A DNA stretch of 56,184 nt, counting the filler, from Platydemus manokwari (taxonomy: Eukaryota), in NCBI GenBank assembly GCA_037951405.1. It is 5 parts of 5 records of this genome, joined end to end, with 100 filler letters (N's around TTAATTAATTAA, not from the genome) between each part and the next. Parts side by side here need not be neighbours in the genome. Positions count along the whole stretch, not along the records: positions 41,847 to 56,184 come from JBBMOY011481418.1; 4 more parts are not named here. The stretch is one strand, 5' to 3'. Made by a program: the position numbers and the translations under genes. The notes beneath the pieces are model-generated. The model did not search any database, had not been told where the DNA came from, and worked only from the letters and a program-made list of their open reading frames with translations. Of this stretch, positions 2,850 to 56,184 are shown piece by piece; positions within the stretch are counted from its first letter, which is position 1, and every line of letters begins with the position of its first letter.

Positions 2850-4070
2850 ACTTATACAAGTCGATTTCCTTTACCAGAGAACATCATTTGTCAACTTCGA
2901 TCAATTAACAGCAAATCCTGTATTTATTTTCATAGTTCTGTAGTTGTAGTTAAGGGAAACATGAGTATTAAAGAAATTAACAGTAACGTCATAAGAAATT
3001 ATTCAAGACATTCTATAATTCTAAAAAAGCTAACAAGAAAAAGAAGAAAGATGAATTTCTATGATACAACGGAAATTCCTAACTCGTTAAAAGCAGCCTC
3101 TCAAGACGAGCGAGCAACAACAGTGTTGCAACCAAAGGGAAATTTATATTCAAAGAGATACTTGAAGATGTGGAGTTTGAGTATGAACACATCATCTTGC
3201 ATACTCACACCACAACAGTGGGGATCAGATTGAAATCCAAGGAAATTAAATTAAAGCTATTTTCGTCGGCTCACACGTATTTGCAGAAAGTACATCATAC
3301 ACGGACTAATTTTGATAAAGTTCAAATAATCTCGTCAGACTTACCAGCGACAATAATTGTGGAGAAAATTAGGAAGAATCAAAATCTTCTCATGAAATTC
3401 CGAAAACCAAGCACATTCAACACTAACAAACGAGTGAAAATTCCGTTCGACTATGGAAAAAGCTATTTGTCATTATGCGCAGTCATTAATAGCACAAGAA
3501 GAGAAGTATTGCGTCGTTTATTTAGACGCCTGGTTAGCAACAGATTTCAATGGGAAAAACACCAGTGTAAGTAATCCTTGAAATTGAATGTTGTCTCAGA
3601 GGCGAAATTAAGCATTAAATTTGTCTGTTAAACCCATATGAACCCACTGCCCTTACGAAAAGTTGCCATTTCCAATTACAATTAGTTAGTGGTAAGTTAC
3701 CCATTTTTTGTGAAGTAATTTTGTTTCCCTTAAGAAAAAATGTTCTCAATGAAGGGAATAAATAACAGTAAGAATAGCAATACAAATGTTACAAGAAGTC
3801 AATAAAATTATGATCATGATCATAACTGAAGACGCAAATGAACAACCGCACAGAGTGGTTGAGAAGAAGGAGGGCATAGCATCACAAATGAATGATAATT
3901 TTGCGATTTTAGAATCTCGAGATGTTGACAGAGGTGCGATAGTGGGATGAAAGCTATCAAACATTTGAGGAAATCGAGAGGCAGAAAGCAACAGAAAGGT
4001 ATCGGCAAACCACTTAATGAATTTCTAGCAGCCAGTTAAAAAGACGCGTGATGGCACGCTTTCACAATCC
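2850..4070 (+). mobile_element. Degenerate Ty3/Gypsy LTR-retrotransposon pol remnant (RT-RNase H)
   Basis: Frame-broken motifs occur in Gypsy order: STFNT..KRVKIPFDYG (~KTAF.T..MPFGL), YCVVYLDA (~VYLDD, ~3507-3530), ITEDANE (~TDAS), AIV..IKHL, KPL, and R.MAR. Many stops and frameshifts are present. Confidence 0.6.
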
Positions 4071-4073
4071 TCC

Positions 4074-5802
4074 TGTAGTGATAGGGTTAGGAGAAAATGA
4101 ATTAAATCCAATAATTGTTGCACGAATACGAATTAACTTTCTCTTGTTCATATGTAAAAATCCCAATTTATATGGTAATCTAATACTTGTATCAATGCAT
4201 ATTTATTTCAGTTTATTTTTTATCACCAATATATAAAGGTTAATAAGATCCTGTTAAATATTTAAAGAAATTTAATAATAAATAAATAATAATTATTAAT
4301 AAACTCAAAGGATTAACCACTAATTAATTTTCCATAAAATATTAACCCGAGTTAAATAGAAATTAAACCCTGATAAACAGGAAATAACAAACATTTATTT
4401 CACCCAGTAATAAAATCACCTATTCATAAAAATTTTATTGAATAGAATTAAATAACCCGTATTTGTCTACCAACCAATACCTCATTAATATAATGTTCCA
4501 TTGAATAAAATTAAACAATAGTCTTTTGTTAAAAATAATAATAATTAATTTATTCATTGGAAACCCCTATTGTAAACACAATAGCATTAAATGAACAAAA
4601 TAATCCTATTGAAGTAAAATAATACGCATATATTTATAAGGAAAATACCGCCAAGTAAATAATAGTATAAATAGGCTGATAAAAGTTAGCTTCTTGAAGT
4701 CTGTTACAACAAACAAATCCAGCCTATCCAAATTATTCAAAAGCCCATAACTAAACATTCAGTTGCATAAGCCATCAAACCAATAAGCATTGTCATCAAT
4801 CATTATCACTCACAAACAAAATATATTTTATTAAAAATTAATGTCTTATATTTCAGATATGGACGATAAGCAGACGCAAAAGGCTACACACCCCAACCTA
4901 TTTTATCGAGGAATCCAACAATCCATAATCACGGGCACCAGTCACAACATAGTAATAAGAAAATATGCACGGGTAGAAGAAATACCCAACAAAATATAAT
5001 AGGACCCTAATAATTGTGCATTCCATAACACAGACTAGATTTCGACTTGGAGAATTAATATTAAATAATCCCGGGGAGACCCATCACATAGTCATACATA
5101 CGGTGACCCCAAGAATCACCATAAACTGGGGGCTGATGAATAGAATTAAAAAACCCGTATTTGTCTACCAGCCAATACCTCAATTATATAATATTCCATT
5201 GAATAAAATTAAACAAGTCTTTTGTTAGTTTTAACGATAATTAATTTCATTCAATGAAAACCCTATTGTAAATACAATAGCATTAAATAAACAAAATAAT
5301 CCTATTGAAATAAAGTAATACGCATATATTTATAAGGAAAATACCCTCAAGTAAATAATAGTATAAATAGGCTGACAAAAATTAGTTTCTTGAAACGTCT
5401 TATACAACCAACAAATCTAGTCTATCCAAATTATTCAAAAGCCCATAACTCAACATTCAGTTGCATAAGCCATCAAGTCAGTCAAATACCTGGAAAATCA
5501 ATTTGATGTTGATATTTTTTGAGAAGATTTTTCAATCCAATGTCGACATGAAGATCAGTAAGCCTTATTCGTTGCAAAATCATCAGCTATTTACTTTAAC
5601 AAACGCATATTTTTCAGATTGATCCCAAAGCTCTTGAACAATTGATGAGGACAAAGGTTACTACAGCTACTATTTCTTTATTTCAATTCTATTACCAACG
5701 TGCAACTGCCCTAGTTGTCACGAATTAAAATTAATAATAACAAAACATAAATAATTCTCCGGTTCTTATTTTTTAAATTTCAAAATAAATGTGTTTACTA
5801 CA
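4074..5802. mobile_element. Candidate solo LTR / LTR-like insertion (right end 5665 or 5802)
   Basis: Begins TGTAGTGA where the pol similarity stops. TTACTACA (7/8 inverted match) occurs ending at 5665 and at 5802. Only imperfect target-site duplications are seen (ctcc/ctct). Confidence 0.35.
4439..5476. repeat. Direct repeat of ~340 bp (4439-4778 and 5137-5476) separated by a ~358 bp spacer
   Basis: Both copies read TGAATAGAATTAAA.AACCCGTATTTGTCTACCA...GTTGCATAAGCCATCAA with high but imperfect identity. Confidence 0.9.
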
Positions 5803-41846: not shown

Positions 41847-44800
41847 ATAATTCAATATTATTTACAAATCATTTTTCTATCAACTACTTAAATTAATTGC
41901 AACCTTTCTTTCCATCAATGACCGTCAGACAGTAAGTAGATTTCATTTATTTTTAAAATAATACCGAATAGTCTCGACATCTAAAAGGATTTTTTTTCAC
42001 TTTTGCTGTTTATTTTTTTTAAAAAATAATTTTTGCAAGTCGTGATAAAAATAATATGAAAAAAAAGGTAATTTGTAAGTAATTACTTGCTAACAACTTA
42101 ATAATCGAATCAGAATCATATTGTATAGGTAATATTATTCAAGTACCTTACGTGATCTTCTGTATTCGAATCGAATATTCATTATTAGTTTCAATCGACA
42201 GTGTCATTCTATTTAATGGAGATCTTTGATATTTCATTAGAGATGAAAATTCTTTTTGAAATATAGCACAGGAAACAAGAGATATATATTTATTCCCGGA
42301 TTATGGTGGATAAATTGAAATCTTAATCATATATCACTGTTGGTCCGGAGTAGGAAATGAAAGATACGATGAGAAAGTCATTGAACTATTAAAGCTATTC
42401 CCGATAATTTCTATCAATCCACTCCGACAATCTCATTCCCAAAAATAGTCTCGATATCAGTCAACAACTTTGCAACAAGCGTGACAAGTCAAAACCAAGC
42501 AGATTTTTAAAATTTTGAGTTTTATTTTTGAAGCGAATATTGGTCAGATTTTTCATTCTAGAGATCAGTTTGAATATTTATCTCAAATATTAAAAACAAT
42601 ATCTCATTTATTCGCTTTTCACTAACTTAGTACCGTTACCAATATTTTATTCATTATGATCGAGCTATCCTAATTCTTTCAAATCCAATACTATCGCCAA
42701 CACTTGTTCTGGAGAATATAATATTTCAAGTAAAGACCTTTTCTATCACGCTCTCGACATTATATTTATTGAGACTTCTGACCACAGAACACTCAATGAA
42801 TTTTTATGATTATACGATATTTATTTATACATGAAAAACGAAATATGACAACGAATATCTATAATGAATATATAATGAATATGATATGAATATGATCAGC
42901 ACTTTACCAGTGCTCTAATAGCTTACTTTTATAACTTAATCTGTCTAAAACAGCAATTCACATTTGTGTTCGATTTTTCTGAAATTTTTTTCATTTTGGT
43001 TTAATTTTTGCGCTGGCATCTCTGAGTTGATATAAATGTGGTTTACATGAAGAATTCTTCAATAATTGCTCGATATTTATCAATATCAAAATCTTATTTG
43101 TTCGATATTTTCAAAAATTTGACATTTTCGGGGGTTCTTCTAATGAGGGTTCTTCATTTTCCATGCTAACAGCTTCATATCCATCACTCTTATCTTTATA
43201 ATTTTTTGAAATAAGATCCTACTTAAACTTTCTTTATCAGAAACCAGTTTTAAAAATAAGTTTATTTCTCAATAATCTGGATTCCACATAAATTTATGAA
43301 ATGATATCATTTTATTGATTTGTTTGGTGAATGTTCCTTTTAATTTTATGTTTAAATAAGGAATATATTTAACATTTACAAAACACAGTCATCGACCTGC
43401 AATCGAGGTTGTTGATGTCTCTTAACAATGGGTCTGAACTTTAGAATAGCTATTTTCAATGACCTCAACGTATTTTCAGAAGATCTTATTAAATAATCTA
43501 TCCACACACACCATCACACACGTATATATATATATATATATCACATGTAGATATAATAAAGGTTTTTAACGACAATTCTACTTTTTGACCTTCTTATTGA
43601 CTTCCTGTCATATATTTAAATTAAGAATTCATGTTTAAAGAATTGCTCATCGGTTACTGTCACTTTCGAATTAATCTAAAGATTGTGAGCTCATGTCAAC
43701 CAATGACATCAAGAACTAATTATTGCAGAATCTTACCAAGAGAAAACATCGATAAAATTGTGTATGTAACTAATTATATGTTGTTATTATTCTTCGACAA
43801 ATTCTCGGCAACTAGAACAGATTCTGTTTAGCATATTGTTTAAATTGACTGGAATACGAAATACAATGATTGAATCAATTGATCGCGACCAAACAAAATG
43901 TGCATTTTGTTTGAATTATATAATAAGCAAATTTAATAAATTGGTAAAATCCAGATATTATCTGGGGATAAATAACTATTAAAGTGATCTTTTATTTGGA
44001 AGACTGCAGTGAGATTCAATTCGAGTTTTAACCTCATTTTTAAGCTAACATCGATAATTTCCTTTCTCAAAATCAATATTGCTCTTAAAACTATCATCAA
44101 AAAATACCCATAAATATCGACAATGCTGTTTCTCATTAATTTTCATCTGATAATAATTCTTTTTCGAAATTCAAGTCCAATCATATCAATAAATAACAAA
44201 ACAATATTTAGAAATGACATTTTTAGAAATATCAGATTATCTTACTTGTTTTCTTTTTTTTAATCAAAACTCGATGTGAAAATGGAATTTCTTTATGAAA
44301 CAAAATGAAAGCAAATTATCAATTTCAGAAAAAAATATTAATTATTTTATTTTTTCACGATAACCAATTGAAATCGGTATTCGAATTTTGATGTGTTTGA
44401 AACACCAATAAGAGTTTCTGATATTTTTATAATGGTTTGAGAGATATTCTTTGTCATCTTTTTCGTTTGTCGTGTGCATATTTTTGCCAATGAATTGCAA
44501 TGAAAGTGAAATTTATCAGTTTAAAGAAAATTATTGGAAATTCTCAAAGATCCTATTGGTAATAACGTAATGGAACCATGGAAACAAGTTCGATATTCAA
44601 TAATATGTAGACATATTAAATTTTCTTGATAATATAATGATGGTTTATCGATTTTAATATGATGAGATTTTTTAAAACATTTAAAGAAGTTATCAAAATA
44701 TTTTAAAATTATTTAAATAATCTTTCGTGGACAGCTATTACTGAATCCATTTAAAATATTCAATCGATATTTGGGGTACAAATGGTGATAACATTGAGTG

Positions 44801-46414
44801 ATATGTGTAATGAATGGCATAGAATTTTATGTAAATCACATAAGTAAAAGATAAAATAAAATGAGGATGAGTTAATGATTCTCAACATTAGTTTTCATGA
44901 CAACCAATCAATATTATGATTCGCTGAGATAATCTAGTATCAAGACATTAATAAAATAAAAAGAAAATTAAAATCGAATGATTCAGGATCATTCAATTCA
45001 TTGTCTTATTTGTAAATGAGTCAAGGACATGATTTTAATTCGTGAAGGCATGTAGTAAGATTTCGATAGGCTATATTTTATTCTATTGAGTTGATGAATT
45101 GGGAGATATTTATTTATAATAATTATTGATTGATTGCACCACCATCAAACAAAACTTGATTAGATAGCTTGGCAATTTTATTCAAGATTTATAGACCTTT
45201 GATATATGACTAACATTTGTTGGTATATATATGATAATGATTCCAAGATTATGTTGCAGTGACAGAATCGTGTCAACTTATTTCGTATGCAGTAATGAGT
45301 CGAGAAAGTAGATGTTCACAGATCATGTCCAAAATCCAAAGCCACGATCATTAGTGACTGGCTTTATCACTTGCAATAATTTTGTCCGAGCTTCCAAAAA
45401 GGTTATTAGATTGCTGATCGACTTACTGTTGAACGGAATAAAAGACAGAAATACCGAATTCAAAATATTAGATTTTATTATGATTTTATTCGGGATACAA
45501 CATTTCTTAGGCAAATTCATGGAACACGTTACTGTAATTGTATTTCATTCCATCTCTCATAATAGATGATTATTTATAAATCTTTACTTCAAAAAGTCTA
45601 ATCTCTTAATATATTTAGTCAAAATCATACCTTTTATCAGATCAATAAAGGTGAAAAATATACGATAGTATATCAACAATGATTGTGGAGAAGTAACACA
45701 TGTTTTCTTCGACGTACATGGATCTCTTTAGCATTTTCATCTTTCCATTACAGACCAATAAATCACTGTCTTCATTGTAATTGATGAGATTTATGCTATA
45801 TTTACTTTGTAAATGTAAAACATGAATGACAGCCGTCAAGATCCTTATTTTGAATATTGATTTAAGAATTCGAAACTCGGCGAATTTTCTCAATATTGGC
45901 GCAGGACATCTCGATCATTTATCATATTAAACACTGATAGAAATATGTGTACGTGCGTATCTATTTATAGAGAGATAAAATATATCGGAATAGAAACTGT
46001 GTTTATATTTTATTTTCAAACATTTCCTTTTAGAGCTTACTGGTCAAAATTAAAATGAAGTAACTCGGACTGATAATAGTTCTATATTACTCTTATACTT
46101 TATTTGTTTCATTTATTTTATTTATTTAAATCCATTACACACTCTTTAAATCATATTTATATAAATCTGTCTTTATTACTCTATTTTATTTCATTAAAAA
46201 ATCTGTCATTTGTTTCATTTTTATCTTACTTATAATCAATATTTTCAAGGAGAAAATAAAAAATTCTAATTTTATTATTGTTACAAATAAGTCGTTTTAC
46301 ACTTAATAATTTATTTAATGCAATAACGATGTTATATACATCATTTTATTATTGGATATGTAATAATGTCTTGGGAGGTTTATTGGATTGTAGCAACTGA
46401 CAAATGCGCAATCA

Positions 46415-46809
46415 CTAATCAACATGCAAACAACATACACACATCATGCATACGACATCCACCTTTCCATTTACGAATCTCCCTTACAATTATATATTTC
46501 TTTTTTATTAAATTCTAAGAGTCATTAGTGTTTCTAAGTTTATTTTTACAGGCAGTGGTGCCCTAATGGCCTACTTCTAAATAAAAAAATAAAATAAAAC
46601 AAGATAAAAGACGTAATACATGATATTCCAATGTTTAATAACATAGATAGCACATCGTGGATTTTTACAGCGAGGGCATAAATGGGTTGACAGGAAATAC
46701 TGGTCTCTTCTTCATTATTTTCTGCAATTATAACACTGGAAATCACAAGAACAAACACAGCAAAAAAACACAACACAATCTATGAAATCACAAGAGATAT
46801 AAATGCCAT
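46415..46809 (-). pseudogene. Disrupted multi-exon secreted cysteine-rich (defensin-like) peptide gene
   Basis: Signal-like IVLCFFAVFVLVISSVIIA plus acidic ENNEE. Phase-consistent GT-AG introns lie at 46619-46577 and 46549-46483 around a 27-nt exon. The spliced product is LCPRCKNPRCAIYVIKHWNIISRPLGHHCLEIRKWKGGCRMHDVC. At least one frameshift is needed. Confidence 0.5.
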
Positions 46810-46971
46810 CTATGATTAATAACTATTTAAAATGTATTTTAATATTTTAATATTTTTAAATTGGTGTTTGTGGTGCTAATGGTGATTGATTGATTAAAAC
46901 TATCATCATAACTCATTTCATTTTATTTTTATTATTTCAGAATAGCATAAAATAATATATTTTTTTAAAAA

Positions 46972-47382
46972 ATGCCCGAATATAAGTGTGAAATTTGTGA
47001 TTTATCTTATAAGACTGTTCAAGCTTTAAAAACACAAGAAAAATCGAAAAAACATATTGATTATGTGAATGAAGTATGAATAAATGTGAATGTGTAGGAG
47101 GTTTTCTGATAAGTAATTATGTTCATGAAGATATTAATTAGTATTAAGAACAAACGGGTTCAAAAATCAATAATTAATAAGCATATGATCATGGATTTAT
47201 TTAAAGAATGTTTATTCAATAATCAAGATAATCATCGAGATGTTATAAGAATTGGTTCTGATAAACATGACATATCGGTAGTGAAAACAAATAAATTAGC
47301 TTTATTTAATTTCGATCAGAAGATATTTATTCGTGAGGATGGAATAAATAAAAGAGCTTTTAAAAGTAAAATAATTTATTAA
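46972..47382 (+). mobile_element. Polinton/Maverick remnant: zinc-finger N-terminus fused by deletion to the protein-primed PolB C-terminus
   Basis: 46972-47079 MPEYKCEICDLSYK...SKKH is C2H2/U1-like. 47119-47382 KNKRVQKSII...FKECLF...IGSDKHDI...NKLALFNFDQKIFIREDGIN matches the Polinton PolB end (KGVKK..YKECLF..RS..H..K.AL..DDKR..DGI). Confidence 0.75.
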
Positions 47383-48337
47383 ATAATTAAAATGATTTAA
47401 AATTTTAATTAATTAAAATTTTTAAAAGAATTTGACCCCGTTAAAATGGAATCAATATCAAATGACTCTGGGCTAATAGTTTTCATAATAAAGATTTTAT
47501 AAATATTGAGTTGGTACATGAAATCGTGTGGTTTTATTTGTTGCAAAGTAAACATTTCAACTTGTTGTTTTAACTGATTTAAGATATTTTCATTGAGCTG
47601 AATTATCTATTTATATCATTTTAGATTTTCGCTTTCATTACCCTCATTAAAATTGAGATAAAAACGAACATTTCCGGCATTTACTCCTTTTCTATTTTAA
47701 TCAATATTTAAACCCCGCAGAAGCTACCCCAATTTGTGCACCATCCCAATAATTCAATTAAAGAAACAATTTGAAACTGGGAGTGAAAAGGATAAAACTC
47801 TATTAAACATCATAGCAAATCAATGACTGATCCAAATAAATATTCGATTATTCCGCCATCTAAATAAATTAAGTTACCTTCTTTAACATAAGGAGAAACA
47901 GTAAAAATGAATGGAATTTAGTTTTATAATTTTAATTCGGTCTGTAATACGGCTTCTGATGCATTAAAACGTGGGACTTTTAGAGGAATAAACTCCAAAG
48001 AATTTCCAGTATGTGAAGATAATGATAATGTTCCACCAGGAGTAGTTATTAGTAATAAAATATGTATAACTAATCGATTATTATGCTATGTTTTCATAGA
48101 ATGTTATTGTAATCTTAGAAAAAAGAATACTTTTTTCCACGTTCAAAATTAATTGATGAGAATTATGAGTGAGTTGCTGTAATGCTAAATTTTTAAAAAA
48201 ATTTTTCTATTTTTTCTTTACAATTTATATTAATGTTGCAATTTTTCAATGCATTGATTTTCATATATATATAATAATTTTACTTTCCATTAATTAATAA
48301 TGATTTTGTCAATGGAGAAAACCATTGGCAAAAAAAT

Positions 48338-48400
48338 TGCCGCCAACCGGGTTCGAATCAGTGACATTTAGAATTCAGTCTAAAATTCTCACAATTAAAA
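48338..48400 (-). tRNA. tRNA-Phe(GAA) pseudogene, 5'-truncated (nt ~10-73), followed by T7 Pol III terminator
   Basis: Minus strand TTTTAATTGTGAGAATTTTAGACTGAATTCTAAATGTCACTGATTCGAACCCGGTTGGCGGCA-ATTTTTTT aligns to eukaryotic tRNA-Phe. The TTAGA/TCTAA anticodon stem is perfect, with GAA anticodon and TTCGA T-loop. The 5' acceptor strand (expected GCCGCCA) is absent. Confidence 0.8.
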
Positions 48401-49650
48401 CGTTTATTTCCATAACAAAATATTTTGACATTTTCTGGAACCTTCCTCAGAGTATTAGCAGCTTGGCTTGTTGAAAATTTTGATAGTTGAAGAGTGATTC
48501 TCCATTTCGCAGTTTTATCGCTCTCCAACATCAAAATTGCTCTGGTTCTGATTCCACACCCTTATCCTTTCATTATCTTCTATAACTTCGTCTCACTGCA
48601 TCATCGGCTTCCTTCATATCGATAATGACTCCACTTTGATGGTAATGCCGTATCCTTGCTGAGTGTCGGATATTGGGCCTTGATAGGTCTCTTGCCATGT
48701 TGTCCACCTCTGTTTCGGCAACTCCCATTTTAAGCAATGTTGCAATTGTACTTTGTGGAATTGATCCGAATGACCCGATGATAACTGTCAGGATACTAAT
48801 TGAGTAGCCCGGTTTGTTTTGTTTGATCCGTTCTCTAAGTGTAGTATAGTGTTCTTGATTTCTGGTGTTGGCATTGTCCAATAGTTCTTCTATGTCAAGA
48901 GGGCACTTGATGTCGGCTAGGTAAATTGATTTTTTGATCGGATCCTCGATGTAAAGGTCAAATCTCAGTTTGGAGACTTCGTCACACTTGAGTAGATATG
49001 GAATAGTCTCGTTGACATTGATTATTTTTTGTTGAGATTCGATTTCTTCATAGATAATTTGCAGGGATGCTTTATGCCGCTGGACTACAAGTGTCAGGCA
49101 AGGGACACATGATTGGAGAACATGCACCAGAGTTTGTTCTGCAGCATTGCACCTTCTACATTTCCTTTTTACTGGATCCTTTTCGAAAACTCTCTCATTG
49201 ACTGGTAAAATACTTAACCTCGCTCGATGAATGAATTGCCGTGAATAATTTCCAATGAATCCGTTAAATATTATTGGATTACATTTAATGTTTGTCGAAA
49301 TGACTTTTGCCAGGTAGCTTGAAGCTTTTCTTTATAGCCATTTTTCTGGGACAAGTCTCGTGTGGATTTGTGTATTATTCTTGTAGCTTTATTTTTGTCT
49401 TTGATTTTAGTATTGAAGCATTTAATATCGATTTGAATTGAATAATTGGGTGGAATTCTTCATTAATGTGATGTATTGATTTATATTTGATTATTTTAAA
49501 CTGATCTTGCACGGAATATGTTATTTTCCCTTGCTCGTTTCGGTACTGACAACCATTCACATATCAGTTGATCTGATGTCCACTAGGCTCTGAAGATGGA
49601 CTGGTGTTGGTATTTAATTTTGTCTTTAAGTCCTTTACAGACAGAAATTA
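48401..49650 (-). mobile_element. 5'-truncated RLE-type non-LTR retrotransposon (NeSL/Utopia/R5-like): CCHC zinc knuckle + restriction-like endonuclease + 3' UTR
   Basis: Open frame 49331-48573 reads RQFIHRARLSILPVN...CRRCNAAEQTLVHVLQSC...RH...LRFDL...LADIKCP...IIGSFG. A ~170-nt 3' UTR ends in AATAAA (48408-48403). The 5' boundary is approximate. Confidence 0.88.
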
Positions 49651-49849
49651 TTTGTTAAAATTTTAAACTTTCAGTCTTGTTCCAATGGTTTATCTCCTAA
49701 TCAAGCGTTAAAGTATTACGCGTACACGACCAATACAAACAAATCGGTTCATTGACCGAAACCCAAAAAATTATTTATTGGAAAATTATTGATCATAAAT
49801 TTAAAATCCCTACAATCGCATGGATAACCTTCTCTGACCAACAAGTTAA

Positions 49850-50500
49850 AAAGCATCAAAACATTCTGTTTTTTACATTTTATTTGAAAACCTGGCCATC
49901 TAAGACATAAATCGTAACCAAACTATTTGTGAATGAGTAGGTTTTAAGACATCCCAATTTGTTTACAAAATGATACTAAGTTGCTTATCTGGTACCAGAT
50001 GGTCCTTTGAGTAAATTTAATTATGCCATAGAATTAAAGCCAAAATGAATTTTTAAATAAATTTACAAATCAAATTCATCCGAACAGTAGATTGAAACGA
50101 ATTACGATATTTCTTGCAGTAAAGAACGACAAAATGTTTAGCAAATTAAATGAAAAGGAATTTATAAATAAATAACGACAAATTACCAGTTTGGATTCTC
50201 AAAACAACTACTGATGAGAATTATATTGTGATTCTTGAAACCAAAACCACAAAAGCGAATATCACGTGAAAAATAGTTATATTGTATATCGGTGTGAAGG
50301 AGATACTTATTAAGAAAATATCACGTAATTTTCAGGCGCGTAGCGATGAAGAAGAGGATTTGCTCTATAAAAAACCTAGTTATTATCATCAGCATGTATA
50401 AGATAAATTAACTGTTTGTCTAAGGATTAAAATGAGAGAAAAGGAGCCAATTTGTAAACCAGAAACTAGTTATCTAAAATATCAATATCGATGATCATAT
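49850..50500 (+). mobile_element. Penelope-like element remnant (RT thumb + GIY-YIG)
   Basis: NNDKLP.LD (~ExNxKLPFLD) at ~50170-50197 and IVYRCEGDTY*...RNFQAR..E (~VY..C..YIG.T.R.L..R..EH) at ~50281-50350. Confidence 0.45.
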
Positions 50501-53500
50501 ATATTATTGTGGTTATGATCTATACGTTGTATCTGTATATTTTGTTTTAAAACTTTCCAAAAGTACCTTAACTCTATTATCACTGTGATTTGTTATGATT
50601 TTAATTCAGTGATGACGAATTAGTTTGAATTTACTTGTTGAAAAGCTTTATTGAGATTCTTAATTAGAGCTAAACTTTTAAAATATTATAAAATTCTGAA
50701 GTTAATTAATGAAATTGACCTATACTCAAATAATAGTTGCTGAAAATATACATTTAATGATATCATCTATTGCATAATTACTGTTAAAAGGATATATTTT
50801 GCAAATGAAATGCGAATATCGCGTTATCTCTTAAAAATATTACTTCGCATTATGCCGATTGAAATTGATGAATAAAGGAAACGAGTTTCAACTAAGCAAG
50901 CCTGCACTTCTCAGTTTAACTAATTTTGTAGTGGATTTGGTGGATTGATTCTGCAAATGTCTTTTCGATATTGTTCTAATAGATTACAAATATACCATTT
51001 GTTGTTTTTAAAGGTTTTGATTGGATTTTATGAAGGCGTTTATTTGTAAGGAAAATACGACCTGTTAGGTAAATGTAATAGGATATTTAATTAATTAAAA
51101 ATAAAATAAAGTAGCTCATATTTATAATAAATATTATAACCATAATAATAATCATTATAACCATAAATATAATGTCGGTGATTGTTGGCACAAACTCAAG
51201 ATAGAAATGCTTGTATTTTGAGAAACTTTTAAAGCAGAATACATAAATACAACGTTTAAAACTAAAGTCGATAATTCAAATGATCATCGGCACAGTTAAT
51301 TAATGCACGCACTGGGAACTGATTGAAAAATCAGGACAAAAAATGATATCTTTAACCAACTCTTATTTAAACAATGAAATAATTTTCATTTTATTTTAAA
51401 TTTCCTTTTATAGATAACTATATGTTTCGAACCGAATAGCCTAGCGTTTCATTATATCCATACAAAAAGCACATATTAGCAAATCTGCATCCTAATAATT
51501 ATAGGAAAAACTAAAGATGTGAAACAAATTACAAAAAAATTTAAGCTATCAAAAAATCGTTGAGCACATTGTGAAGATGAAATTAAGAATAAAACAGTCG
51601 ATAAATAAACACTTCTTATTTATTTTTACCCCAATAAAGACTCTGAGTTTATATCTTTAATTGGTCAATCTTATTTAACGTGTATGTATTTTTTAATTCA
51701 TGGAATATATGCATTTGATCCTCAAAAGTATTACCGTGTTTGGTAATTCTTTAATATAAAGGATTTATACAGACGTTCTCGTAAAGAAATCAAGTGCTTC
51801 AGAGGCGTGGCATGAAAAGAATATCGAAATACTAACTTGGGGAACAAAACAATATATAAAAATTGACATTTTCAGACTTTAATAGCGAATGTATACTAAA
51901 TAATTAAGTTAGTTCCTGTATAGTAATGGTAATTGTATTGGAAAAAGATGACCAAGGAATGATTATGTAATCACATATGGATATCAATAAATCAAAAACA
52001 ATGATAAAAGATATTGTAATTTCTCGGGAAGGAATAACTGGACATATATTATTTTGGTCATCATTCCAACGATTATTTGTAAGATGAAAAATTCACAACA
52101 AGAATGAACAGCCGAATAATTACGTTCACGTTAAGAACAAACAATCCGATATGGCTGAATTATTAAGTAGGTTGGATATAAAGATAGTTTTTGATGATAT
52201 TTGTAAATAAGAGTGTTCAAAATTAATCGATATTAGTTGCAATTTTATGTCTTGATCATCACAATAAATGTCCACAGATAGTGAAAACCTAGAAAATTCA
52301 TTGGATGCTGATGTAAAAAGCTTGTCAATTCTATCATTATTTGCTACAGCTTAACTTGGATCTTCAAAAGCTTAATACTTTCAAAAACGGCTCTGTTCTC
52401 TATATATTTTCATCAATTCTTTCGTAATTTACACATTTTGTGTATAAATTTTCATTCCTTCAATTTTGTCATACTTTGTCACTTTATACTTAGTTTGATT
52501 TTATGTCCTGAGGAGGGTTCACAATGCTGCCATTTAACCAAACTAACGTATTCACAGCATTCATATTATTCTACTACTGATTCCCATAAATTATTGATGT
52601 ATTTTTTGCAACCCCCGTACACGTCAAAAATTGCAAGCCATTGATAAAATATACAAAGCCAATTGAAAAATTCGACTAAATATTAATAATCTCGAGATAT
52701 ATCACTGAATTTTCAAAATTTATCTTAAAAATGTTTCATAAGGTTGCTCTACATAGAAGCTATTACTAACAATTGGTTTGATAATATCCTTATATTGATT
52801 AAGATAAGGTATTGAATAATCATTAAGGATCAATCTAGCAATTCTGAATCACGGTATATTGACAAAATCGTGTGATCAAAGCCTGGTCACAATAATTATG
52901 CAAATACTTTTGTAATAAAACACGAATATTTTGCGTTGATTAGCTTTTATTAACGCAAAATAAAAGAAAATCTGGGTGTTAAGATGAAAACATTATGCAA
53001 ACACATATCAAGATAGATAAACATTTGTTTTAACTTTCTCCTTCGTATAAATTACAACTCCAAATCAATACGGTAACATTTTGATCCAATATTTGTGCAC
53101 ATTTATGCAATAATTATAAAATATTGATTATTAATTCTTGATCTAACACAAGAATTGTCAATAAATAATATTCAAATAATGGTTTATTGATTGTATTTCA
53201 TATTCGATGGAAGGAAAATTCCATTTTTATAAAATCCTTCGATTGATTTGAATCCAATCCAATCTACTGGAAATAATAAAACAGAATCCATCGTAAATCG
53301 TTCACCAAATAAAGTTTATCTGCATTCAGTGTTGAAAAATATGAAGTAAAGTTGTGGCTATTTTTTATCTCAAAACATGACAATATTTGCTGCCAACAAT
53401 GATAGCCGTGAAGAAACTTGATATTGTCTAGAAATCGATTTATCAGATCTTCATATTTATTGATGTGGATACAATTCTTGTCAAAGATTTTCACACAATA

Positions 53501-56184
53501 AATCATCATAAGACTATTTATCATCTCGCTTACATGCATATTTTGTTTTAGTCTGATTGTTAGTCAGTATGATGCCTACCCTTCCAATAGTAATTGCCTT
53601 TCGGATTTTGTTCTATTTTCTATTTGCTTGCTATCCTTTTTCCTTCTTTCTCCTCATTTGTTTTTCCAATTTTAAGGCATTCTTTATAGCTATCGGTGGT
53701 GCTATATTTCCGTTGTATTGTTGAAATCCTCAGGAGTAACCTCTTATTTCTAGGAATATTTCCTCTTCATTAAGTGTCTTTGATGCAATAAATTCTATGA
53801 TTTTTGCTAATTTGTGACCATTTGGTTCAATTTATTTTGCTCAGATGACATGTTATAAGAAGTGACGTTCTTAAGTCCATTCACATTTTAAAGTTTTGGC
53901 TTTTAGGTTTGTTTTTCTTTATTTGAAGAATAAATTTTCAATATATAATCTTTCAAAGTTTCAGAATATATTATCGTATCATTTATTGTGTGGTAAATCT
54001 GTTATAATGGTGTTGATAAATATATGGAATGTAGTTACTGCGTTCAATAGGCTAAACGGCATTTTGCGAATTCATATAAATACTCTTCAGTGAAGTGTTT
54101 AGAAAAGGAAAAATTAGGGCAAACCTTAAGATCGCTTATTTTTCATGAATATCGAAGAAAACAAACTGAAATAATCTTAAATATTGGATCCAGAAATGAC
54201 AGATGAAATAAGACAAAATTGATAGCCACTTTGTTTTATGAAATCAGAGTGGGAACTTGTCACCACAAGATGAATTTTAAAGCTTTTTGTCTTAAGATGG
54301 TACATCCAATGTTTGATAGAACATCTGAAGTTTGATTATTACTTCTAGATAAATGCCTGATATTCAGTAGAATTTGGTATTGGAATATACTGTGCTTTTG
54401 ATCAAGGAATCTAAAGAAGTTCGTCAAAGCAGTGTTGTTGAGTACAACACCTACAATAAAATAAATGATAAATCAAATATAATTTGGTGCGTGACTTTTC
54501 AGTTCGTTTTCGATCTGTTGTTTTGAAAATAATAGCGGCTTACAACTGAAAAATAGAATTAAGAAAATAGAAAAATTAAAATAAAATTAGTTACCAAATA
54601 TAGAGACCATATGAATAATGGGATAAAAATAGTAATAATAAAATCTAATAATATGATGAAAAAATTAAATAATAAAAATTATCGGATTAAAAAATAATAT
54701 TGATAGAGACACAAAATTAATGATGCTTCTTATACATCAAACCACTTATCCAATCACTAAATACAGCAATTAATAGTTCTCGCCAATTGATTCAATTCAC
54801 AAATTCTATAATAAAAATTAATTTACATTGTTATTAATAACAATCGTTCCAAAGGAATTCCATTTATTAGTCAACATTCAATTCACATGCAATCTCGAGA
54901 ATAACATACCACTTGCATTGGAAAAAAGAAACTCTGAACACTTAAATCAACATCTAATCAGCACCACGAGGCTCACGTCTTGTAAAATCCTATTTGCTCA
55001 AAAGAAACCAACATTGTACGCTACCGGTGCCATACCCTTTCGAGGCAGACATATTTGACTTACTGAATAGTGACGAATCATTAAATGAATCTGAAATCAA
55101 AATGAAGAGTAAATGCAACGCAAACAAACACAAAAGGTACTTTGGAAAAACTCAAAGATAAAAAGATACTTCTAGGATAAGTGACAATAACAATTACATG
55201 AGAATAACTTTGACTGTGGCTCATTAATATGAATATGCATGGACCATAAAAGCATCAGAAGAAAATCTAAACAAAACAGTTCATAAGATTCGATTGAACA
55301 ATTAACAGGGATGAGACTGGCCACTACAAAAGATCAGGACGACCATATTCGATTCAAAAGAAGACAAGTGATGGCCTTGTGTAAAAAATAATTTCAAAAT
55401 CGAAAATTTCTATCAATTGATCTTAAAAAAATTTAGGAATTGTTACTATCACAAAAACATATAATGATACTGTGAGCAGGAGCAGCTGGCTTTTTAAAAA
55501 GCTGAAATACTAATTCACAAAGAGTAAGCATTATGTGAAGATAAATGCTTAATAATCAGTGGCTTATCATTTCAAAACACATATTATATCCTAATATGAT
55601 AAAGAAAAGATAATGAACGCTTTCAGTATAAGACATGATCAGGGATAAACAATAAACCGATGTAAAACTAAACTGACGGAATTATTAATTAAATTGTGTT
55701 GGGATTTCACAACCAAATAACAAATCATACTCAGTCTTATGTGTACCATATAGCATCTTAAAATAAGTTACAAATTCTTTAGATAGATTTCGGTAGTAAT
55801 GTCTTCAAAACCTGCTAGTGAAGATCGCATAGAACCATAAATATAAATAAAATCAATAATTCCACAACATATTTATTTATTAAAGAGGATAAACAAAACT
55901 GAAAATTCAAAAATTAAACTATCATATATTTAGTGGGTTTTGTTTAAAATAGAAATGTGCTACCAAATGAAGGTTTGAGCGAGAATACTAGCAAAATAAA
56001 TTATATGCTTTAATTTAGTTGGATCATATAATCTCGAACATTGAAAAGTGCAAACGAGTGTCGAATATTTGGTCGAACATTTTATGCATTGATCAAAAAA
56101 CGGGTTTACAGAATTTACTTTGGAATTGTGATCGATTGGAATGGAACTCAATATCCAATAAACACACACACACACAAACATATA

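Follow-up and report, generated by a model that had tools for sequence, protein, structure and literature searches.

A decayed NeSL-type retrotransposon fragment adjoining a tRNA-Phe-like sequence in Platydemus manokwari

Regarding the fragment of a retrotransposon without long terminal repeats (non-LTR retrotransposon) that ends directly against a sequence resembling phenylalanine transfer RNA (tRNA-Phe) in the flatworm Platydemus manokwari, the question arises of whether it records an insertion targeted to a tRNA gene. The window analyzed here, meaning the whole stretch of 56,184 nucleotides (nt), consists of five joined parts of assembly GCA_037951405.1, and the locus lies in the part at 41,847-56,184, which corresponds to JBBMOY011481418.1. 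The element copy spans approximately 49641 to 48395 on the minus strand and is 5'-truncated and partly decayed. We lean toward the view that a tRNA-targeting element of the NeSL/LIN type was inserted via target-primed reverse transcription (TPRT) at the D-loop of a tRNA-Phe gene or pseudogene and decayed thereafter. This view draws on an intact restriction-like endonuclease (RLE) domain homologous to R2/NeSL-type proteins; on a tRNA-like flank in the same orientation, which is 78% identical to nt 16-73 of human tRNA-Phe and is followed by seven T residues (T7); on relatives of the same clade that adjoin tRNA-Leu, tRNA-Gln, and Gly-like tRNA pieces; on the published elements LIN15_SM and LIN25_SM, which sit in tRNA genes and have the 3'-terminal motif in common; and on the presence of multiple copies of the element in a public sequencing run. 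The domain identity and clade membership of the element, the anatomy of its junction, and the occurrence of other tRNAs beside its relatives are established by the present analysis.

The endonuclease-bearing reading frame

The best preserved part of the copy is the tail of a minus-strand open reading frame (ORF; 48573..49283), which is open over 236 codons from 49283 to 48576 and closes with a stop codon at 48575-48573. This tail contains the motifs FIHRARL, a C-x2-C-x8-H-x4-C zinc knuckle (49107..49160; C42/C45/H54/C59 of the 236 amino acids, aa), RH, R-F-D, and D-I-K, and the RLE catalytic core at 48906..48965 comprises R107-x-D109 (RFD) together with D124 and K126 of D-I-K. In alignment A1, which has 16 rows comprising the window ORF tail and 15 relatives, C42, C45, H54, C59, R69-H70, D109, D124, and K126 are invariant columns and are all kept in the window copy, the knuckle and catalytic residues of which are, as judged from this alignment, intact. 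An earlier note on this DNA had described the end of a NeSL/Utopia-like ORF with these motifs, and their alignment with columns invariant in the 15 relatives confirms that description. The same note had regarded FD in place of PD as a sign of decay; this cannot be maintained, as the lineage normally has R-[IV]-D (RID or RVD) at this position and RPD occurs in one relative.

Searched exhaustively with phmmer, a set of 1.84 billion representatives yielded 493 relatives of the ORF tail, the best with an E-value of 4.5e-60 at 44% identity, and several of the matches were proteins of approximately 1,540 aa with an N-terminal Peptidase_C48 domain and RVT_1. Peptidase_C48, an N-terminal Ulp1-type protease, was found in four full-length relatives (35-39% identity), and RVT_1, the reverse transcriptase (RT) domain, was present in P0004, P0008, P0011, and P0015. 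Among proteins of solved structure, the A1 profile also matched R2 in its C-terminal endonuclease region (9nl3_A at 1.7e-19, 9dou_A, and 8gh6_A at 2.5e-4). The proposal of an RLE non-LTR retrotransposon was thereby borne out through the phmmer relatives, A1, the R2 profile matches, and the two domains in the relatives. The combination of Ulp1 protease, RT, CCHC, and RLE in the full-length relatives is the NeSL-type architecture described by Kojima and Jurka (2015; PMC4640811), and sequence comparison supports the assignment of the window fragment to the NeSL-type, RLE-clade non-LTR retrotransposons. Other searches with the ORF tail were less informative: Pfam assigned no family to the 236 aa, the ESM Atlas yielded generic eukaryotic zf-RVT clusters only, a scan of viral contigs for related loci turned up no relatives, and a homologue search limited to 130-413 aa returned nothing, which is uninformative beside the 493 phmmer relatives.

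Upstream of the open tail, a decayed and frame-shifted coding remnant occupies 49284..49641 on the minus strand. Weak homology to P0001 residues 121-199 (tblastn, E 0.005) continues in another frame, with one or more stops, up to approximately 49641, and the lineage motif (L)xWING reads YVNG in this remnant. In tblastn searches with full-length relatives, matches were confined to 49373-48606, in addition to a weak match reaching 49641, with no RT homology upstream of the remnant; neither an RT domain nor Peptidase_C48 was found in the truncated window copy. Since nothing further upstream matches the full-length relatives, the copy has no RT and, of roughly 1,540 codons, keeps approximately the final 400, with the 5' truncation point at approximately 49641-49650.

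Copy number was estimated from the summed depth of contigs, matched at an 80% threshold, in a single public run that contains the locus and is kept as short contigs. The element is multi-copy, with a summed depth of approximately 60-270 versus approximately 18-25 in unique flanks, and its other copies in the contigs of this run are 83-91% identical.

The 3' junction and the tRNA-like flank

The 3' untranslated region (UTR) occupies 48395..48572 on the minus strand, measures 178 nt, has no poly(A), and ends in AAATAAACGTTTTAA. Its last 24 nt (48418->48395) are occupied by a 3'-terminal motif of the lineage; similar ends of the form AAATAAA...TTTA(A/G) were found at the loci L001, L002, L007, L024, and L027 and in the published LIN25_SM and LIN15_SM. 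Before their flanks, the relatives end in ...AAATAAATATTTAA (L001), ...AAATAAATTTAG (L002), ...AATAAATTTTTAG (L007), and ...AAATGTTTTAG (L027). The 3' ends of the published elements, taken from a machine-read PDF of S6 Fig of PMC4640811, are ...AATAAACGTTTTAA for LIN25_SM and ...ATATTTTTAA for LIN15_SM, and, by eye, LIN25_SM agrees with the window at 21 of its final 25 positions. The earlier note had placed the end of the 3' UTR at 48401 (...AAACG), and both this note and the Rfam match took the bases CGTTTTAA as part of the D-stem. Since the relatives and LIN25_SM share the 3'-terminal motif, the element most likely ends at 48395 (...AAATAAACGTTTTAA), and the tRNA part most likely begins in the D-loop, at nt ~14-16 with an uncertainty of 2 nt, with nt 1 to ~15 missing. 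A start at nt ~10 with just the acceptor strand missing, as previously proposed, is corrected in this manner, and the junction lies in the D-loop instead of near the acceptor/D-stem boundary at which cleavage had been suggested. On this sequence comparison, the 3' end places the window element nearest to the LIN25_SM type of planarians. The element may be LIN25_SM-like, as judged by the printed 3' end, and the catalogued target of that family is tRNA-Glu.

Approximately 60-70 nt before the 3' end, at window positions 48440-48470, the motif GCC(C/A)A(T/A)GCTG(G/C) is common to the window, L001, L002, and L024, and may be a 3' UTR element recognized by the RT.

The flank itself is a decayed tRNA-Phe(GAA)-like piece at 48338..48394 on the minus strand, delimited by Rfam RF00005 and by hand alignment, and it corresponds to tRNA nt ~16-73. 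Directly past the discriminator base, an A and then T7 (48330..48337, with the T run at 48336-48330, both read from the sequence) resemble a terminator of RNA polymerase III (Pol III). When aligned by hand with nt 16-73 of human tRNA-Phe-GAA, the reference for which is printed in PMC11706605, the piece shows 45 identities over 58 positions (78%) with one gap. The anticodon stem, GAA, T-loop, and 3' strand of the acceptor are in register, and an unbroken identical run of 10 nt, TTAGACTGAA, extends across the anticodon, although the anticodon loop has 6 nt (CTGAAT), one base short of 7. Eight of the 12 mismatches replace G/C by A/T, which is the direction expected of decay where the genome has 71.5% A+T. 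We consider it quite probable on this alignment that the flank is a decayed sequence derived from tRNA-Phe. Of the tRNA-Phe(GAA) flank claimed previously, the 3' part in the same orientation and the T7 run therefore stand, whereas the negative ARAGORN result, the sub-threshold Rfam score, and the 6-nt anticodon loop speak against a recognizable tRNA.

Small-RNA genes beside the relatives

The 3' flanks were read on 12 contigs that encode the closest relatives. At L002, which encodes P0004, the 15-16 nt directly beyond the 3' end of the element agree fully with a published primer sequence for tRNA-Leu, and the contig stops there; this junction lies at a D-loop position matching that of the window. 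At L007 (P0003), the 22 nt after the element end are those of the 3' end of human tRNA-Gln-CUG and are followed by a T run, and at L024 (P0002), the flank is a tRNA anticodon arm with the Gly-like anticodon TCC, 13 nt of which are identical to a published tRNA fragment. Four contigs (L003, L004, L005, and L025) stop within the UTR. The flanks of L001 and L027 were initially read as tRNA-like, based on a T-loop box and a CTGAAAA loop, respectively, and are not counted as tRNA junctions after negative Rfam results. In a tree of the RLE domain, the window falls in a clade of six rows with P0004 and P0002 (Shimodaira-Hasegawa-like approximate likelihood ratio test, SH-aLRT, 98), and the next clade out (SH-aLRT 99) adds P0003.

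In the flank of L001 (4672-4800), the closest relative, the T-loop-like box GGGTTCGAATC is followed 40 nt on by a hammerhead-core-like CTGATGA ... GAAAC, an arrangement that recalls the hammerhead short interspersed nuclear elements (SINEs) of flatworms. A hammerhead in this flank is unsupported by Rfam, in which Hammerhead_3 reached 12.7 bits with an E-value of 5.3.

Four distant metagenome relatives with 24-37% identity (L008, L012, L013, and L017) have complete genes for U2 small nuclear RNA (snRNA) after their 3' ends, as would be expected of Utopia. These Utopia-like elements occupy gene arrays of U2 (and U2-5S) and group apart from the window in the RLE-only tree. The recovery of U2 genes beside these elements indicates that the reading of 3' flanks recovers known targets. 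At L008 (3409-3908), a complete U2 snRNA gene is followed 200 nt further by a 5S rRNA gene.

An important precedent was previously reported in the planarian Schmidtea mediterranea, in which LIN15_SM resides in tRNA-Arg genes of three isoacceptors and LIN25_SM in tRNA-Glu genes; both belong to the R5/LIN lineage of the NeSL clade (Kojima and Jurka, 2015; PMC4640811). NeSL-1_TV was found to be specific for tRNA-Pro (PMC4640811), and target specificity was described as having diversified within the platyhelminth R5/LIN lineage (PMC4640811), which was restated in PMC5035012. The earlier statement that some families of the NeSL clade target other tRNA genes is correct in view of LIN15_SM, LIN25_SM, and NeSL-1_TV; the novelty of the target was overrated, since tRNA-gene targeting by the planarian R5/LIN lineage has been in print since 2015. 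Full-text searches of the literature turned up no non-LTR element reported to target tRNA-Phe. The targeting of tRNA genes by planarian NeSL/LIN elements being published, Phe would at most be a new target, and, if confirmed, an incremental addition to what has been known since 2015 of flatworm NeSL/LIN elements.

LIN25_SM (3' end ...TAAACGTTTTAA) and LIN15_SM (...ATATTTTTAA) resemble the window in being RLE non-LTR elements that adjoin a tRNA in the same orientation without poly(A), and differ from it in the position of the junction, which is at nt 4/5 of tRNA-Glu for LIN25_SM, at nt ~25 of tRNA-Arg for LIN15_SM, and at nt ~14-16 of tRNA-Phe in the window. NeSL-1, which occupies the spliced-leader genes of C. 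elegans, and NeSL-1_TV share with the full-length relatives of the window element the protease/RT/CCHC/RLE architecture and site specificity for multicopy small-RNA genes, whereas their targets and host phyla are different and the window copy is without protease and RT. The RLE of Utopia, a member of the NeSL clade in U2 snRNA genes, is homologous to that of the window at 24-37% identity, whereas Utopia forms a separate clade in the RLE tree and the window piece at 41847-56184 contains no U2 gene. Neither U2 snRNA nor 28S ribosomal DNA (rDNA) was found at the window 3' junction, with no Rfam family at threshold in 41847-56184. R2 (9nl3, 9dou, and 8gh6) has the C-terminal CCHC and a PD-(D/E)xK-type endonuclease in common with the window element, uses TPRT, and has the downstream part of its target adjoining its 3' end; it differs in its 28S rDNA target, its lack of an Ulp1 protease, and its low identity to the window. 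Dada DNA transposons, such as Dada-tY_CaAu in tRNA-Tyr and tRNA-Phe (PMC8869645), likewise insert inside tRNA genes, and as transposase-bearing DNA transposons are unrelated in mechanism.

A proposed targeted insertion and its alternatives

We infer that the window element was inserted by TPRT, by analogy with R2, and that the tRNA was its target. The endonuclease would have nicked a strand within the D-loop/A-box region of the tRNA, at nt ~13-16, and reverse transcription primed at the nick would have brought the 3' end of the element (...CGTTTTAA, without poly(A)) against tRNA nt ~16-73, followed by the T-run terminator of the gene. During or after integration, the tRNA would have lost its upstream part, and both the element and the tRNA remnant would have decayed afterwards. 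For the family of the window element, specificity for tRNA-Phe and the use of several tRNAs appear about equally probable. A more specific proposal, which is tentative and which we regard as somewhat doubtful, is that the family is a tRNA-Phe specialist cleaving the A-box/D-loop and represents one branch of a NeSL/LIN radiation in which each family was retargeted (Phe, Leu, Gln, Gly, Arg, and Glu) at a different position.

Several observations weigh against a targeted insertion into tRNA-Phe. ARAGORN detected no tRNA in the flank, and Rfam returned no family at threshold across 41847-56184 and none at E<=10 in a 2.2-kb scan; RF00005 reached 18.3 bits (threshold 29, E 0.065) as a 5'-truncated match to model positions 8-71, only when the stretch was cut at the junction, and the fold of the tRNA-like piece was no better than that of shuffles (z -0.87). 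Upstream of the element, the motif of tRNA nt 1-15 was not found within 3 kb, and the tRNA piece found no better local match there than an 8-mer, with a score of 16 versus a null mean of 17.2, which agrees with the earlier statement that tRNA nt 1-9 are not visible at the 5' junction; the published 5' junction of LIN15_SM, in contrast, retains tRNA sequence (PMC4640811). AGACTGAA at about 49670 was considered as an upstream tRNA remnant and rejected, being just an 8-mer below the null. Among the comparison systems, a tRNA flank is present in just one of the four printed LIN25_SM copies (PMC4640811), Rfam gives no tRNA match, truncated mode included, for the tRNA-like flanks of L001 and L027, and no tRNA was found in the flanks of L006, L023, and L026. 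One old copy is the sole junction for the family of the window element. In addition, the depth over 48164-48445 is 100-700 times that of a single copy, and the flank may belong to a high-copy repeat.

This depth bears on the alternative that, instead of a genuine tRNA-Phe gene, the element targeted a tRNA-derived portion within a high-copy repeat, either the head of a SINE or a repeated tRNA-bearing unit, in which case insertion would still have occurred by sequence recognition; we consider this unlikely. Summed depth is approximately 1,900 at 48352-48445, 7,900 at 48258-48351, and 14,000 at 48164-48257 versus approximately 18 in unique flanks, and low complexity is clear only in the last of these bins. 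The exact contigs end at 48239 and 48414, just before the junction, the piece departs from a canonical tRNA, and the T-loop-like box and hammerhead-core-like motif of the L001 flank are arranged as in flatworm SINEs, with the weak Rfam score given above. However, T7 immediately after the discriminator base fits a tRNA gene and would halt the Pol III transcription of a SINE, the exact contig at 47684-48239 is single copy (depth 17.7), and very deep simple-repeat contigs that match partially at 80% could yield the depth. The depth over 48164-48445 may reflect either such partial matches or membership of the tRNA-like piece and its downstream flank in a high-copy repeat.

The tRNA piece may instead have been carried with the element, by 3' transduction (read-through) out of a master copy residing in a tRNA-Phe gene, by a switch of template from a pre-tRNA to the RNA of the element in the course of reverse transcription, or by a later segmental duplication or rearrangement, which we judge to be rather unlikely. 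The absence of a tRNA 5' part upstream, the U-run in which the piece ends, as Pol III primary transcripts do, and a contig that joins 48071 to 50143 and skips the block, with 21 nt on one side, are in its favor. However, the depth of the block is not halved, the tRNA flanks of the relatives and of LIN15_SM continue into genomic tRNA-gene flanks, and variation in the tRNA type and junction position by family argues for targets rather than passengers. Chimeras of small RNAs and long interspersed nuclear elements (LINEs) are known with the small RNA on the 5' side, which also counts against a passenger. A chance juxtaposition of an AT-rich tRNA lookalike, or of an unrelated tRNA pseudogene, with a randomly inserted LINE fragment would accord with the ARAGORN, Rfam, and fold results, and is nevertheless very unlikely considering the 45/58 identities to tRNA-Phe, the in-register anticodon arm, T-loop, and terminator, the same orientation without a spacer, the D-loop junction as in L002, and the habitual adjacency of the lineage to tRNAs.

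For annotation, the locus is a dead LINE fragment with a disrupted tRNA-Phe pseudogene rather than a gene or a functional tRNA. R2 and other site-specific RLE retrotransposons are under study as gene-insertion tools for safe multicopy sites, and the evolution of target recognition in these proteins would be visible in a lineage that repeatedly switched tRNA genes with differing cleavage positions. If true, the tRNA radiation would provide a series of RLE/RT integrases, retargeted in nature, for Pol III genes.

Two further features were observed around the locus. The contig that joins 48071 to 50143 has a depth of 12.1 and skips 2,071 nt comprising the element and the tRNA piece, its shorter side measuring 21 nt; this join may reflect an allele with a deletion or an empty site, or else an artefact of repeats. 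A stretch of approximately 70 nt at 47656-47728 has a depth of approximately 4,000-5,000 versus approximately 18, and 43, 20, and 26 contigs diverge exactly at 47656 and 47724/47728; this stretch probably represents a short repeat of high copy number or a portion of a miniature inverted-repeat transposable element (MITE) or SINE.

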